Assembly: GCF_006345805.1 (NCBI RefSeq)
Contig: NW_021835173.1
Span: 1-46,919, forward strand
Direction of reading: 5' to 3'
DNA: 46,919 nucleotides
Origin: Octopus sinensis
Taxonomy: Eukaryota
Below, piece by piece: positions 12,001-46,919 of this stretch (the stretch's first letter is position 1; every line of letters begins with the position of its first letter). A program made the position numbers and the translations under genes. Below the pieces are notes generated by a model. The model did no database searches. It was not told the DNA's origin and was given only the letters and a program-made list of their open reading frames with translations.

Positions 12001-15000
12001 CCGTTTAAATAATCTGTCTTTCATTTGATTTCTGCAGAGCAGCATCATATATATGTATTGATATTTCAATATAGTTGTATGTATATCTGTCCTATATAAG
12101 CTGATGGTAATATACAGCTCTATGTAAAAACGTTGGTATATATTCCGAATCACAGAATTTGGCGTTTATTTATTAGCAACAGCTAAACTCTTCGAAAGTC
12201 ATGATTCTGCATCATGAAAGCCTATCAACGGCTCACATAGCCATTTCTTTTTCTGTACAATTGAGAACTTCTATGCGTAACGAAGAATTCAAAACAATCT
12301 CTAAATGTTTAATATCTCGATATTGTTTCTAATATTTTCAAATATTCTTCTCAGTTTTAAATATTTCAAAACAAAAGATATTTTGAAAAGCTTATTTTTA
12401 CTTTCATTGTTTCAGGTATCGCTTTTAGTTCTGGAAAACAATGGAAAGACCAGAGAAAGTTTACCATGTCAGCACTTCGGGATCTAGGAGTAGGCAAAAA
12501 AGTTCTGGAAGAAAAGATATCTTTAGAAACCCAGAGATTAGGCGAAGCTTTTCAATCTCAAAATGGTAAACCGTTCTCCTTGAATAAACAGTTGTCACTC
12601 TTCACTTCGAGTATCATATACAATATCATATTTGGTAAAAGGTGAGTAGCAGTACAGATCCAGAAATATATGGGTGTGTATGTTTGTGTTTGTGACCTGA
12701 GATGCTCGTCCTGCCTTGGTTTTCTTTTCCATTTTTCTTTAATATATACCTGCAGGCTTGAAAGCCTACTACGGATCACTAACTCTAGCCTTAGCTGTGA
12801 ACACCGAACCTCACGGATGACCGGTTATAGCACATACGCACCGTACCGTTGGTTTAGATCATCAGTGAACTAAACCTCTCATATTCTTGCCCACTCCCCT
12901 CCAACCCCACACCTAACTACCAACAGACTGTGTCTTCCACTATTCATGACCTCATTTCCACCTCCTGTCTTCCTCCCACCGCCTCCAACTTCATTGTCCG
13001 TACCCCACGCACACCCACTATTTACTTCATTTCCAAAATTTTCAAGCCTAACAATTCTGCACGCTCTATCGTCTCCACCAGAAATTTTCTCCGAATATTT
13101 CGACCGTGTCCATGCCCCCCCCTAATAGCTTCCCTTTCCTCACACATTCACGATACCAATCATGCTCTCCGTCTGTTTAACTCTTTCTGCTTCCTTTCTG
13201 ACCCCTCTCAAATTCTGTTCACATTTGACATTAGGACTCGGTATACGGTGATCACATACAACGAAGGAATTCTTGCGCTTAAACCCTTCCTTGACCATCG
13301 GCTTAACCCTCAACCTGACACTTCCACAAGTCTGGTTGAACTTCTCCACTCCCTCAGCTGGGGAGTTTTACCAAAAGTTTCGGGAGTGGCCATGGGAACG
13401 AGAATGAACCTCAACTGTGCGAACCTGTTCATTGGCTACGATGAGGCCCAAATATTCTCAAAATTCACTGGTCTCACTCTCGAGCTATACGGTCGTTATA
13501 TAGACGACTGTATCGGCGTTACCTCACTCTCCCGCGAACAACTGGACTCCTTCCTTTTTTCTGTCCAATCCTTCCAGCCTAACCTCGAATTCTCCTCTAC
13601 TATCTCTAAATCTTCCATCGAATTTCTCGACATTTCTGTCAGCAACCTCCATCAAGCATACTGACTCACACTCCTACCTTAACTTCTCCTCATCCCACCC
13701 AACCCACACCAAGCTCTCCATTCCCTAATCCCAATTCCTCTGTCTACGCAGGTTATGCAGTGATGGCCATGACTTTGTGACTCAATCTCAACTCATGGCC
13801 CGCCCATTCGTCACCGATTCCTTTACATGCACCTCTAGTAATGTTATTTACAGCATCACTTGATCCCTCTGTCCTGCTCTGTACATTGGTCAAAAGGGAT
13901 ACCGCTTGACCGAGCGGTTCGCGGAGCACCTCCGAGACATCAGATTTGGCAATGATACCCCGGTCTCGCGCCACTTCCGCTCTACTAGTCATTCGCTACA
14001 TCTGTCCATGTTCTGACTGTGTCAGCACAGGTGTCACCATGTCTCCCGCCTTCAACTTGAACATGCATTAATCTTAAATATATATATAAATTCTATAATT
14101 AAGACGTGTGAATTCGTTATTCGTCCGTATAAATTTGGAAGTGCTGTTTGTTGGATATTAGTTATTCGATATCGCTTGGTCGAATGCGTATTTGATTATT
14201 AAGTACTTTCAAACTTATACGTGAAATACTACACTGAAGTGGGAAATAAGTGAGTAAATATGAATTTTACATCTCTTTAATCCCGAAACGCGTATGTAAT
14301 TAATCAAAGTCGTGTGGATTCGTTATATTTTCTCTTTACCTATGTAAAATAAGGTACCTTATTATAGAAGAATAGTATTTAACTGCTATTTCTAATTCGG
14401 TACGTGGTGAAGCATTTTTCTGAACACTAATTATAATTATAGAATTTTTGTATAAGGTTACCGATAAAGGTTATTTTAACATACCGAAGTATTGATTAAT
14501 TAATTTTACTCGTTATTATTATTGAAAGTATGTGTGTGTGTGTGTGTGTGTTGTGTGTGTGTGTGTGTGTGTGTGTGTGTGTGTGTGTATGTGTGTGTGT
14601 GTATTCTTTATTCTTCTATTCTTTTACTTGTTTCAGTCATTTGACTGCGGCCATGCTATGAATGTATAATGTTTTGCTGTTTTCTTTTTGAAGGATCAAA
14701 TACAGTGATTCTGAGTTCGTGGAGATCGTTGAACATTTTCACGATGTGTTCAAATATATTAGTGTATTTGTACCAGAAAATTTCTTTCCATTCCTCAGAT
14801 TTTTTCGGTGGAATTCTCCCGTAAGTATAAAAACTTCACATCAAAATACGGATATTAAATCAACTTTACAATCCAGGGTATATTTTTAAAAATTCAAATC
14901 CAGGTTTCCAGAATATTCTGAAGGCAATTGCTTGATAAAAAATATGCCGGAATTTCGTGTTAACTTATTTCATCCCTTGAACGCAGAAAGCGGATATACT

Positions 15001-18000
15001 AAGTTCAAATCTATATTACTGTTAACCCCTACTATTTTGAAAACGCCTCTCATTAAACTGTGGGAAGAGGAGAGAGAGAGAGAGAGAGTCTTTCAGATTT
15101 TTATAATTGGTCTACATATTGAAAAAAAACCCATAAATAATGCAGATTTTTCAGTTGCATAAACTAAATGTCAAAGCCGAAAGGGAGAAACTGCTTGCAT
15201 CAACTTTCTATAAAAGCAGGTAGTAATTTTACCTGTAAAAGCAGATGGCAATTTTACCTTATTTTTATTCTTAATGCAAGTTTTAAAGAATGCAGTTCGA
15301 TTTTAACCGTTACTTTTTCGAATCTATAACGGAAGTGACAAAGGGACAAATTTGGCATATTTTGCTTTATGAGTTCAGTAAAGGCAAGAAGGCAACGGAA
15401 AAGGCAAGGGATATTAATGCAGTGTATGAGGATCGGACAATAAGCGTAAACCAGTGTCAACAGTGGTTCCAGAAACTCCGAGCCGGAAACTGAAGCCTAG
15501 AAGACAAACCTCATCTTGGAAGATCTGTAGAGCTCGATGAGGACGTCCTGCAAACCCTGGTGGAAGAAAATCCCATTATAACTTGGATCTGGTCAGTCAA
15601 CCATTCATCGACACCTGCGTGCCATCGGGAAAGTCAGTGAATTGGGGCAACGGCTTCCTCACAACCTTTGCGAATCTAATCGCGCACAGAGCGCGAATGT
15701 TTCCTCTTCTTTGCTGTCACGTTTCACGAATGAACCTTTTTTTGGAGAGAATAGTTACTGATGAGGAGAAATGGTTTCTATATAAAAATTTCAAGCGCCG
15801 AAAAGAGTGGGTAGAGGAAGGAGAAACTCCGGCACCTCAAGCTAAACACGTAATCAGTTGTCATCAGTTTGGTTGGATATGAAAGGTTTAGTAAACTTTG
15901 AACTTTTAAATCCAAACCAAATTATAACAAAACAGATCTACTGCGAGCAGCTTGAGCGGCTTAAATCAGTGCTAGAAGAAAAATGATTATCTTTACTCTC
16001 AAGTCGAAAGGTGTTCTTCCATGAAGATAATGTTCGGTCACATACAGCAAGGGTGACATTCCAAAGGCCGAAGTCATTTGAATGCGAAACGAATGCCCCA
16101 CACACCATATTTGTCGGACATTGTCTTATCTGATTATCATTTATCCAGTTCAAGCTGGATCAAACCTCGTCCTCCCTGAGCTCTGGGAAAGTAAAGTCGA
16201 TCCACTACTGCCTTTGGATGGTGCATCTTATTACAAGTCAGTAGCTTGCGGAATTTTCTATCAAGTGTCATTATTTCACTGGTATTCCAGTTAAGCATAT
16301 TGAAGCCAGAAAGAACTATCATCATCATTATTATTATTGAGTGAGAGAGCAGTGCATGCCATCAAAGTGACACTGGGATTATTATTATTATTATATTATT
16401 ATTATTATTATTATTATTATTATTATATTATTATTATTATTATTATTATTATTATTATTAGTGTGTGTGCGTGTGTGTACATATGAATATATAACTCCCT
16501 ACTTCAAAACAATTCCATGCAAGATAAATAATTCATCTTACAATTAAATGTAATTCCGTGTGCAATTTATATGGAGTTCGTAGTTTGGAAATAAAGAATT
16601 TTATTACCAACTGGTTTATAGTGGTTAGATTGGTGAATAAATGTGTTTATTTTTATTGACTCAATAAGAAAGTCAGCTCCAACTAGATATAAACATAGAA
16701 TTAAGTGTTATTTGATAAAAAATGTTATATTGTAAAACATTTAATTCGGCAAATACGTTACTGTTATTGTTGTTGACTGTCTTGTTATAGATAGAAAAGG
16801 TTATAAGGAAGCAGGAGAAGGTCCGAAGTTACGTAAAATATAAAATCATAGAACATAAAGAAACGTTTAATGCTGAAAACATAAGAGATTTCATTGATAT
16901 GTATTTGCTGACGCTTGAGAAGGAACCAAACAGTGAAACGTTAACTGGTGAGTTTTGTATGAGCTGTTAATTATATTCTTATAATTCTTCAATGATGTCA
17001 ATAAAAGAAATTAACAACAAAAAGAATTATTTTAATCATAAAATAAAATATAAAAGATATAAAGGGTATATTATAAATCATTTTGAAGAAACAATATTCT
17101 ATAATAGATAATCCATATAATTTTCCCTTTCCCAAACATGCTTTCTTTATATGCACACACACACAGACACGCACAGACAGACAGACAGACACACACACAC
17201 ACACACACACACATACATACATATATATATATATATACATACATATATATATATATATATATATATATATATATATATATATATATGTGTGTGTGTGTGT
17301 GTGTGTGTGTGTGTGTGTGTGTGTGTGTGTGTGTGTGTGTGTGTATATATATATTTACTGAGATCTCCCTTTTAGTAGAAAGAATAGCTATAACTCTTTG
17401 ACTGCTATTTCTAAACTCGGTGTGTGGTGAGGCAAATCGTTGCTAAACCCTTAATTACTTAGTATATATATATATATATATATATATATATATATATATA
17501 TATATATATAAATATTCAATTAACTTGGGAAAATTATGAGAAAAGCTATTTCTATTCATTTTTGAAATATATATTATATATATAAAACTCAACTTGTGTG
17601 TCTGTGTGTTTAACTTCCCGGCACATCTCCTCATAGCGAACAAATCATAGAACCACCAAAAATGGGTCACTTAAAGTTTAGGCGAATGAAAATTGAACTG
17701 CGCTATTTCTGTTCCGAAATTCATTTCGCAAGTGCAAAAATCGATAATGTGTTTGTTTAGGCCTTATCCCATGCATTTAATAGTGAACTTTACTCAGTCA
17801 GCTGTTTGACATGAACTGTGTTCACCACGCGTGCAAGCATGCGTAAATTGCATGAAAAATTTTAAAAAATCAAGAAATAAATTTTCGGGATGTAGCCTGG
17901 ATGGTTTTTTCGTATTAATCGTTTGGACTTTGTGAACACATGCCAATTGTTTTCATAATATTTATAACGCTTTGAATTAAACGTGACCATTTTGCGTTGA

Positions 18001-46630: not shown

Positions 46631-46856
46631 CTTTTACCAAATATGATATTGTATATGACACTCGAAGTGAAGAGTGGCAACTGTTTATTTAAGGAGAACG
46701 GTTTACCATTTTGAGATTGAAAAGCTTCGCCTAATCTCTGGGTTTCTAAAGATATCTTTTCTTCCAGAACTTTTTTGCCTACTCCTAGTTCCCGAAGTGC
46801 TGACATGGTAAACTTTCTCTGGTCTTTCCATTGTTTTCCAGAACTAAAAACGATAC
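46631..46856 (-). CDS. P450 copy B exon 2 (open)
   Basis: (G)[42 protein letters not shown]; 5 of 226 nt differ. Confidence 0.9.
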
Positions 46857-46919
46857 CTGAAACAATGAAAGTAAAAATAAGCTTTTCAAAATATCTTTTG
46901 TTTTGAAATATTTAAAACT

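Follow-up and report, generated by a model that had tools for sequence, protein, structure and literature searches.

Clusters of CYP2 genes in vertebrates, such as the CYP2A/B/F/G/S/T cluster on human chromosome 19, have grown by tandem and inverted duplication with gene conversion between the copies. The palindromes of the primate X and Y chromosomes (P1-P8 and the X palindromes) represent another kind of gene-bearing inverted repeat, in which pervasive conversion keeps the arms more than 99.9% identical around spacers of 2-170 kb. The instability of long inverted repeats drops steeply with the length of the spacer and with the divergence of the arms. Here we describe a palindrome with two convergent cytochrome P450 genes in Octopus sinensis. 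The window that was analysed is a complete unplaced contig of 46,919 bp from the O. sinensis PacBio assembly GCA_006345805.1, which is eukaryotic, has about 36% G+C and is rich in microsatellites. Very probably it contains the greater part of a real inverted segmental duplication, some 50 kb in length, that lies in a cluster of CYP2-like P450 genes.

The inverted self-matches of the window, detected by an inverted-repeat search and by minus-strand self-BLAST, form one antidiagonal chain, which leads from 12353-12692 paired with 46919-46580 (98.5% identity) inward to 30158-30319 paired with 31228-31066 and leaves a centre of 746 bp unpaired (30320-31065). The inverted arms are similar across many kilobases, far beyond chance, and the spacer between them is short and non-duplicated. 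As a whole-arm MAFFT alignment paired non-homologous segments near 20.6-23.7 kb, block-wise global alignments were used, and 12 blocks covering 11.9 kb contained 403 substitutions (3.4%; 96.6% identity) and 78 gap events. The divergence between the arms is a mosaic: it is 0% at 16667-17166, below 1% over 18.5-20.5 kb and 2-5% across most of the remainder, and values of about 10% are confined to microsatellite-rich blocks close to the centre, where the inner arm segments are unequal in length. Two perfect inverted runs (706 nt and 445 nt) are hard to reconcile with a mean divergence of 3.4% unless gene conversion occurred recently.

An earlier note on this stretch, made from its letters only, had described everything from 12353 as mirrored around 30320-31065. 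The inverted chain confirms the mirroring, but position 12353 is no biological boundary, because it merely mirrors the end of the contig; the real start of the left arm is at about 7304, and exon 1 of its gene belongs to the arm. Inverted matches to positions 7778-9376 of the left arm occur in the exon-1 regions of O. vulgaris gene X (94%) and of another O. sinensis contig, L006 (94.4%). The spacer of about 750 bp given in the same note is correct as the length of the unpaired centre, although the long stretches in which the two arms are more than 95% identical sit about 4.4 kb apart (28214 to 32579), and the innermost arms, rich in length-variable microsatellites, are only about 87-88% identical. 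Owing to this distance and to this divergence the persistence of the palindrome, which had been called notable, is not very surprising.

The palindrome is also present in another species. Three overlapping stretches of the O. vulgaris chromosome OX597824.1, identical in their overlaps, were joined into a composite of 99.5 kb, and the entire window (1-46919) is collinear in one orientation with positions 1075-50142 of this composite, through the flank, the left arm, the spacer and the right arm. The synteny check in congeners that had been recommended is thereby answered in favour of the palindrome. The right arm corresponds on the plus strand to composite 32883-50142, which carries gene X (P0124), with 94.5-97.8% identity, and the spacer is matched at 91-92% identity (30569-31685 against composite 32363-33528, 91%). 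The palindrome of O. vulgaris itself has arms that are 93-98% identical and that extend outward through exon 1 and about 1 kb upstream of it. Its innermost pair (composite 31349-31510 with 33045-32883) is the counterpart of the innermost pair in the window, and its spacer (composite 31511-32882) is 1372 bp long, the difference in length from the window being mostly (CA)n. The two O. vulgaris genes are convergent, P0003 on the plus strand (12479255-12495322) and P0124 on the minus strand (12507058-12527969), and two more tandem P450 copies follow P0124 on the minus strand. The O. vulgaris assembly was made with Nanopore reads and NextDenovo and the O. sinensis assembly with PacBio reads (PMC10700109). 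Since species, individual, technology and assembler all differ, a shared assembly artefact is not credible, and this comparison at the level of assemblies places the palindrome in the genome itself. Exon 1 of the right-hand gene, expected by the earlier note beyond 46919, is found outward of the corresponding position in the O. vulgaris chromosome and also on the O. sinensis contig VCDQ01002058.1. Two peculiarities of O. vulgaris arm A are also seen: the annotated gene A ortholog (P0003, 400 amino acids; OX597824.1:12479255-12495322) skips exons 4 and 5, both of which are in frame in the genome, and there is no equivalent of window 17276-19921 (intron 4).

The relationship between the arms was analysed by a quartet test, in which O. 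sinensis A and B and O. vulgaris A and X were aligned in 600-bp windows. At 100 informative sites the arm groups with its own ortholog in the other species, at 28 sites the two arms of one species group together, and four sites give the third grouping. Each arm has its separate ortholog, and the arms are therefore paralogs and not alleles. The 28 concerted sites cluster at 16375-16974 (exon 4), 20186-20639 (exon 5) and 24917-26027 (exon 8), and these clusters coincide with the greatest likeness of the arms. Considering that orthology sites dominate and that concerted sites are clustered, the arms evolve mostly independently, with patchy conversion after the species split; homogenisation of the sex-chromosome type is not seen, as only patches have been converted. 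In 3.3 kb of clean, unconverted sequence the arm-to-arm divergence is 2.5-2.9% in either species and the ortholog-to-ortholog divergence is 1.2%, so that the duplication is about 2.4 times as old as the split between O. sinensis and O. vulgaris, which has been put at about 2.5 million years (PMC10700109). The earlier view of a real palindrome, produced neither by a fold-back nor by an allelic mis-join, is thus upheld by the collinearity and by the separate orthologs alike. As a side observation, exon 8 of O. sinensis A (25324-25502) is closest to the O. vulgaris tandem copy C (2 differences, vs 8 to its ortholog), and exon 2 (12416-12641) is closest to O. vulgaris X (1 difference); these affinities suggest that conversion reached beyond the two arms of the palindrome to other copies.

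The state before the duplication appears to be kept in O. bimaculoides. Collinearity between the arm and the most similar gene there (P0002, 76% identical) begins at exon 1 and extends about 2.8 kb beyond the stop codon. This gene has a more distant P450 upstream in tandem, and no opposite-strand P450 exon was found within 10 kb downstream of it. The inverted homolog of window 4293-7303 lies 7.7 kb past the stop codon of this gene, and one gap of 833 N is the only one between the gene and this flank homolog. No homolog of the spacer is detectable in O. bimaculoides; the only match there is to window 31592-31685, just inside arm B, and it is in arm-B orientation. Because the flank lies inverted downstream of the O. 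bimaculoides gene and because this match is arm-B-oriented, arm B should be regarded as the resident copy and arm A as the derived inverted copy. Taken together, the sequence comparisons are strong evidence that O. bimaculoides would represent the single-copy state that preceded the duplication.

The outer breakpoint of the left arm can be placed at a single base. Homology of the flank to O. bimaculoides ends at 7303, and the hexamer AACCTG precedes the microsatellite array; this sets the first base of the arm at 7304 and places the growth of the microsatellite just within the arm. The window reads ...gagtgcgaga up to the breakpoint, continues with AACCTG(ACAT)nTACTCCGAACAATTTG, and after the array comes TACTCCGAACAATTTG..., and the source-type copies (L006, O. 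vulgaris X and O. bimaculoides) read ...gatgccAACCTGTACTCGGAACAATTTG... at the same place. Long (ACAT)n/(ATGT)n arrays recur in the window, at the outer breakpoint (7310-7780) and in both inner arms (26229-26501, 28608-29226 and 34649-35097), and an array of the (ACAT)n type was not found at the flank junction in O. bimaculoides.

From these comparisons the following course of events can be proposed. A unit of about 23 kb, with one end roughly 1 kb before exon 1 and the other about 5 kb beyond the stop codon, would have been copied in inverted orientation by a single event in the lineage shared by O. sinensis and O. vulgaris, once this had separated from O. bimaculoides. The new copy (arm A with gene A) would have been placed between the unique flank, which ends at 7303, and the DNA downstream of the source gene B, and the outcome would have been two convergent genes around a sub-kilobase spacer. 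Since then the two arms have come to differ by about 3%; private deletions, a tandem duplication and changes in the microsatellites have accumulated, and exchange between the arms has been limited to patches around exons 4, 5 and 8. To judge from the geometry, the mechanism could have been a fold-back or template-switch event in replication or break repair, with its junction at AACCTG.

Gene A has the characteristics of a CYP2-like P450: its translation contains the PPGP hinge, the I-helix motif AGTDTT, the K-helix motif EVHR and the heme-binding motif FGSGPRMCSG, and Pfam PF00067 matches exons 1 and 8. The best protein database matches of gene A are Octopus proteins named 'cytochrome P450 2B4-like' or '2J6-like', and CYP2B/2J-like is accordingly the closest named group. 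The same exon model exactly regenerates the annotated proteins P0123, P0124, P0001 and P0002 at other loci, and all six copies examined with it have intact frames of 498 codons, four of them reproducing annotated proteins exactly. Gene A and gene B are convergent (tail-to-tail), their stop codons are about 10 kb apart, and exon 4 of gene B is identical to exon 4 of gene A. Membership in this family suggests a putative detoxification (xenobiotic monooxygenase) role for both genes.

Several points weigh against the proposed history, or against parts of it. The copy number in O. sinensis and the exact sequence of arm B rest on an assembly and not on reads; on the O. sinensis chromosome the X-like gene is followed by intergenic-type sequence and then by a gap of 100 N, and not by a palindrome centre; the O. 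bimaculoides assembly is a short-read assembly with the gap of 833 N, which makes the absence of a second copy strong but not absolute; and the 6-bp match AACCTG at the junction may be due to chance. To these has to be added the similarity of the outer right arm to other contigs. Positions 38639-46919 are 99.3-99.4% identical to VCDQ01002035.1 and VCDQ01002058.1 and 98.9% identical to the chromosome copy, VCDQ01002035.1 is in a tandem position according to its flanks (gene, intergenic sequence, next exon 1), and it ends at the same homologous base as the window, 63 bp before exon 2. It could be proposed on these grounds that the palindrome is real but the contig partly chimeric, the right arm outward of about 38.6 kb having been taken from reads of a near-identical tandem paralog or of another haplotype and linked to the rest across a weakly supported stretch; both the replacement 37450-38638 and the noisy part of arm B (35617-39062) do sit at the possible joint (37.4-38.7 kb). 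We consider this unlikely, as the whole right arm is collinear with O. vulgaris X and resembles X more closely than it does the next tandem copy (97.8% vs 94.4%, at 45.7-46.9 kb), and VCDQ01002058.1 has the position of X according to its upstream context, so that it may be no more than an overlap with the window. Even if the right arm were partly chimeric, the reality of the palindrome would be unaffected.

The overlap of VCDQ01002058.1 with the outer right arm is 99.4% identical, and this contig continues through an intron 1 of 9 kb to exon 1. The P450 cluster is fragmented and probably redundant in the O. sinensis assembly. Window position 46919 and position 1 of L003 (the end of VCDQ01002035.1) coincide to the base, 63 bp before exon 2, and at this shared contig end the assembly graph probably branched at the boundary of a repeat. 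The tandem neighbours in O. sinensis (L003, L005 and L006) are 99-99.4% identical to gene B over exons 2-5, whereas X and C of O. vulgaris differ by about 5%; the high identity in O. sinensis reflects either recent homogenisation or unpurged haplotigs.

The proposal of an intact inverted gene pair also has to account for the state of gene B, which, as written in the contig, is frameshifted in exons 5, 7 and 8 by several 1-bp indels and has a 15-bp insertion in exon 8. Small indels were polarised by comparison with arm A, with two other O. sinensis copies and with the O. vulgaris copies (up to five copies), and 28 private ones were found in arm B, compared with 0-4 in each of the other sequences. 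Among the 27 in the low-quality stretch, 22 are deletions, mostly of 1 bp and often within short runs; they are equally frequent in introns and exons, and none is present in the adjoining 39501-41000. On the one hand, the frameshifts, the insertion in exon 8 and the structural loss in an adjacent intron are what might be seen if gene B were a genuine, recently inactivated pseudogene of O. sinensis and the small indels real decay. On the other hand, the indels are confined to 3.5 kb at the same density in introns and exons, are strongly biased to deletions, and have no counterpart in arm A, in three other O. sinensis copies or in the O. vulgaris copies, while the neighbouring parts of arm B are clean, and neutral decay would be neither so local nor accompanied by an indel-to-substitution ratio near 1. 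Clean B-type coding sequence exists moreover in the same assembly, as P0123 on the O. sinensis chromosome and as the partial P0005 on contig VCDQ01002035.1. Inactivation of gene B is therefore decidedly unlikely, and the local, deletion-biased excess of indels, at this ratio to substitutions, indicates consensus error: the frameshifts are in all likelihood PacBio consensus errors and not decay, and gene B would be intact in the animal. The annotated protein P0024 ('cytochrome P450 2J5-like, partial', 286 amino acids, O. sinensis) tracks the frameshifts of gene B, and since these are probably consensus errors this database entry is unreliable.

Pairwise ratios of nonsynonymous to synonymous change (dN/dS, NG86) range from 0.73 to 1.30 for all comparisons among six copies (gene A, L005, L007 and the relatives on the O. 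vulgaris composite) and from 0.85 to 0.94 against O. bimaculoides, with 120 amino acid differences. Ratios near 1 with the frames kept mean either very relaxed or diversifying evolution. It is very unlikely that the palindrome is anything but a passive duplicate, in the sense that the conserved sub-kilobase spacer and the convergent arrangement are under selection, for example as a shared 3' regulatory or termination region, and that patchy conversion between the arms and between arm and tandem copies, at dN/dS near 1 and with frames kept open over millions of years, shuffles and so diversifies substrate-binding parts of these P450s.

That the contig is an artefact, made either by joining two haplotypes of one locus wrongly as an inverted repeat or from a long read folded back on itself through a missed adapter, is extremely improbable and is contradicted by the independent O. 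vulgaris assembly with the same order of left arm, spacer and right arm, by the quartet test with its separate ortholog for each arm (100 sites vs 28 and 4), by an arm distance 2.4 times the between-species distance, which is impossible for alleles, and by a spacer and kilobase-scale arm-specific differences unlike those of a fold-back read, even though the contig is short, unplaced and of PacBio origin with its right arm running exactly to the contig end, one right-arm stretch looks unpolished and a few percent of arm divergence could in principle be allelic.

The coordinates of the features are collected in table 1. The arm-specific insertions and deletions and the substitutions listed by the earlier note are real differences, but two of the apparent insertions turned out to be losses in the other arm. 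O. vulgaris X and C contain the 988-bp segment of the right arm and O. bimaculoides contains part of it; the segment shows no target-site duplication, and it is therefore explained by a deletion in arm A before the species split and not by an insertion in arm B. In the left arm 2.6 kb (21078-23716) stands alone opposite 735 bp found in the right arm alone (37905-38638). O. vulgaris X carries this 2.6-kb segment, as do three further copies in O. sinensis (L003, L005 and L006), and it is missing solely from arm B of the window; it is thus ancestral and was lost there. New transposon activity was rejected as the source of these one-arm segments. The arm-B-specific replacement lies within the noisy stretch, and contig VCDQ01002058.1 ends inside the segment that is missing. 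The 838-bp unit duplicated in arm A is single in O. vulgaris X and in L005, and each of these single copies is matched twice by the window.

Among the contents that had been described as mirrored, P450 exons 2-8 and the mariner fragment (Pfam HTH_48) are present in both arms, and the Penelope-like element and Helitron labels gained no Pfam match at E up to 10, which leaves mariner as the sole label confirmed in this way. The retroelement in intron 2 could be Penelope-like according to the motifs in its open reading frames. Outside the palindrome there is a decayed open reading frame with no Pfam match (4720-5355, plus strand), and a short interspersed repeat of about 180 bp occurs in many copies (1-200, 3600-4020, 5700-5870, 7880-8090 and 10580-11000) and is present also in O. 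bimaculoides.

Table 1. Positions of the palindrome, its two P450 genes and associated features in the 46,919-bp window (ORF, open reading frame; SINE, short interspersed element)
Feature	Position	Strand	Remarks
Unique flank outside the palindrome	1-7303		Collinear (+) with O. vulgaris chromosome OX597824.1
Outer breakpoint of left arm	7304-7781		AACCTG at 7304-7309, then (ACAT)n array at 7310-7780 (~470 bp)
Left arm (arm A)	7304-30319	+	Mirror inside the window only for 12353-30319
Gene A, intact CYP2-like P450, 498 amino acids	8705-25502	+	Eight-exon model, all introns GT-AG, intact translation
Gene A exons	8705-9071, 12416-12641, 14694-14820, 16791-16947, 20183-20319, 23755-23851, 24375-24581, 25324-25502	+	GT-AG model
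Decayed retroelement ORFs, intron 2	12858-14013, mirror 44245-45426	+	YIDD reverse-transcriptase motif, then GIY-YIG-like ...IYSITC...YIGQKG...
Mariner transposase remnant, intron 3	15287-15879, mirror 42517-43109	+	Pfam HTH_48 (Mos1 transposase) E=3e-17; Transposase_1 weak
838-bp tandem duplication	17548-18385		Private to O. sinensis arm A; gap in arm B
Spacer	30320-31065		(CAA)n, (TATG)n, partial SINE head, ~300 bp (CA)n, ~200 bp unique sequence; read from the sequence
Right arm (arm B)	31066-46919	-	Inverted chain; truncated by contig end
Low-quality stretch of arm B	35617-39062		Holds all but one of the private small indels of arm B
Gene B exons 2-8	~46856-46631, 43742-43616, 41618-41462, 39091-38957, 37411-37315, 36795-36594, 35828-35639	-	Exon-by-exon alignment; exon 1 beyond the contig
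Arm-B-specific replacement	37450-38638		~2.1-2.6 kb missing; ~0.9-1.2 kb (TA)n-rich sequence and retroelement-tail-like ORF instead
Segment absent from arm A, 988 bp	45592-46579		Empty site in A at 12692/12693, no target-site duplication

What does this locus contribute? It leaves general knowledge of palindromes and of P450 evolution unchanged, and it offers a clean, relatively dated case in which a detoxification-type family grew by inverted duplication in a cephalopod. The pre-duplication state can be seen in O. bimaculoides and its outcome in two descendant species, the position of the outer breakpoint is known to the base, and tracts of conversion are visible. For users of the O. sinensis reference two aspects are highlighted: the P450 cluster is fragmented and partly redundant there (three unplaced contigs and a scaffold gap), and the annotated 'partial' protein of the contig probably reflects uncorrected consensus errors. 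The suggestion in the earlier note that such a palindrome is a route for the expansion of the P450 family fits the locus, as the cluster has further tandem copies and O. bimaculoides has a single gene at the site of the pair.

Compared with the systems described so far, the octopus palindrome has something in common with each of them. With missed-SMRTbell-adapter chimeras and haplotig mis-joins it shares the form of the contig (short, unplaced, from PacBio reads and with one arm cut off by its end), but its arms have separate orthologs and private differences on the kilobase scale, and its spacer is conserved. It resembles fold-back duplications, as produced by microhomology-mediated break-induced replication (MMBIR), fork stalling and template switching (FoSTeS) or breakage-fusion-bridge cycles, in the inverted copy adjoining its source, the short unduplicated spacer and the little or no homology at the outer junction; unlike in those systems, the mechanism can here be judged only from its product, and the event is millions of years old, with its junction overlaid by microsatellite growth. 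Primate X and Y palindromes are likewise large gene-bearing inverted repeats with conservation across species and conversion between arms, whereas the octopus arms are about 97% identical, their conversion is patchy (28 of the 132 informative sites), the spacer measures 0.75-1.4 kb and there is no evidence of sex linkage for the locus. The similarity to the vertebrate CYP2 clusters extends to the CYP2-like clan of the genes, the growth by tandem and inverted duplication, the conversion between paralogs and the fast coding evolution. The differences are that the octopus event is specific to a cephalopod lineage, with no orthology to the vertebrate clusters, and that the locus is a simple two-gene palindrome with a sub-kilobase spacer whose pre-duplication state is seen in a relative. 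The locus thus behaves like the vertebrate CYP2 clusters and lacks the near-identical arms that are the hallmark of sex-chromosome palindromes; it is an ordinary type of gene-family expansion and not an assembly error.

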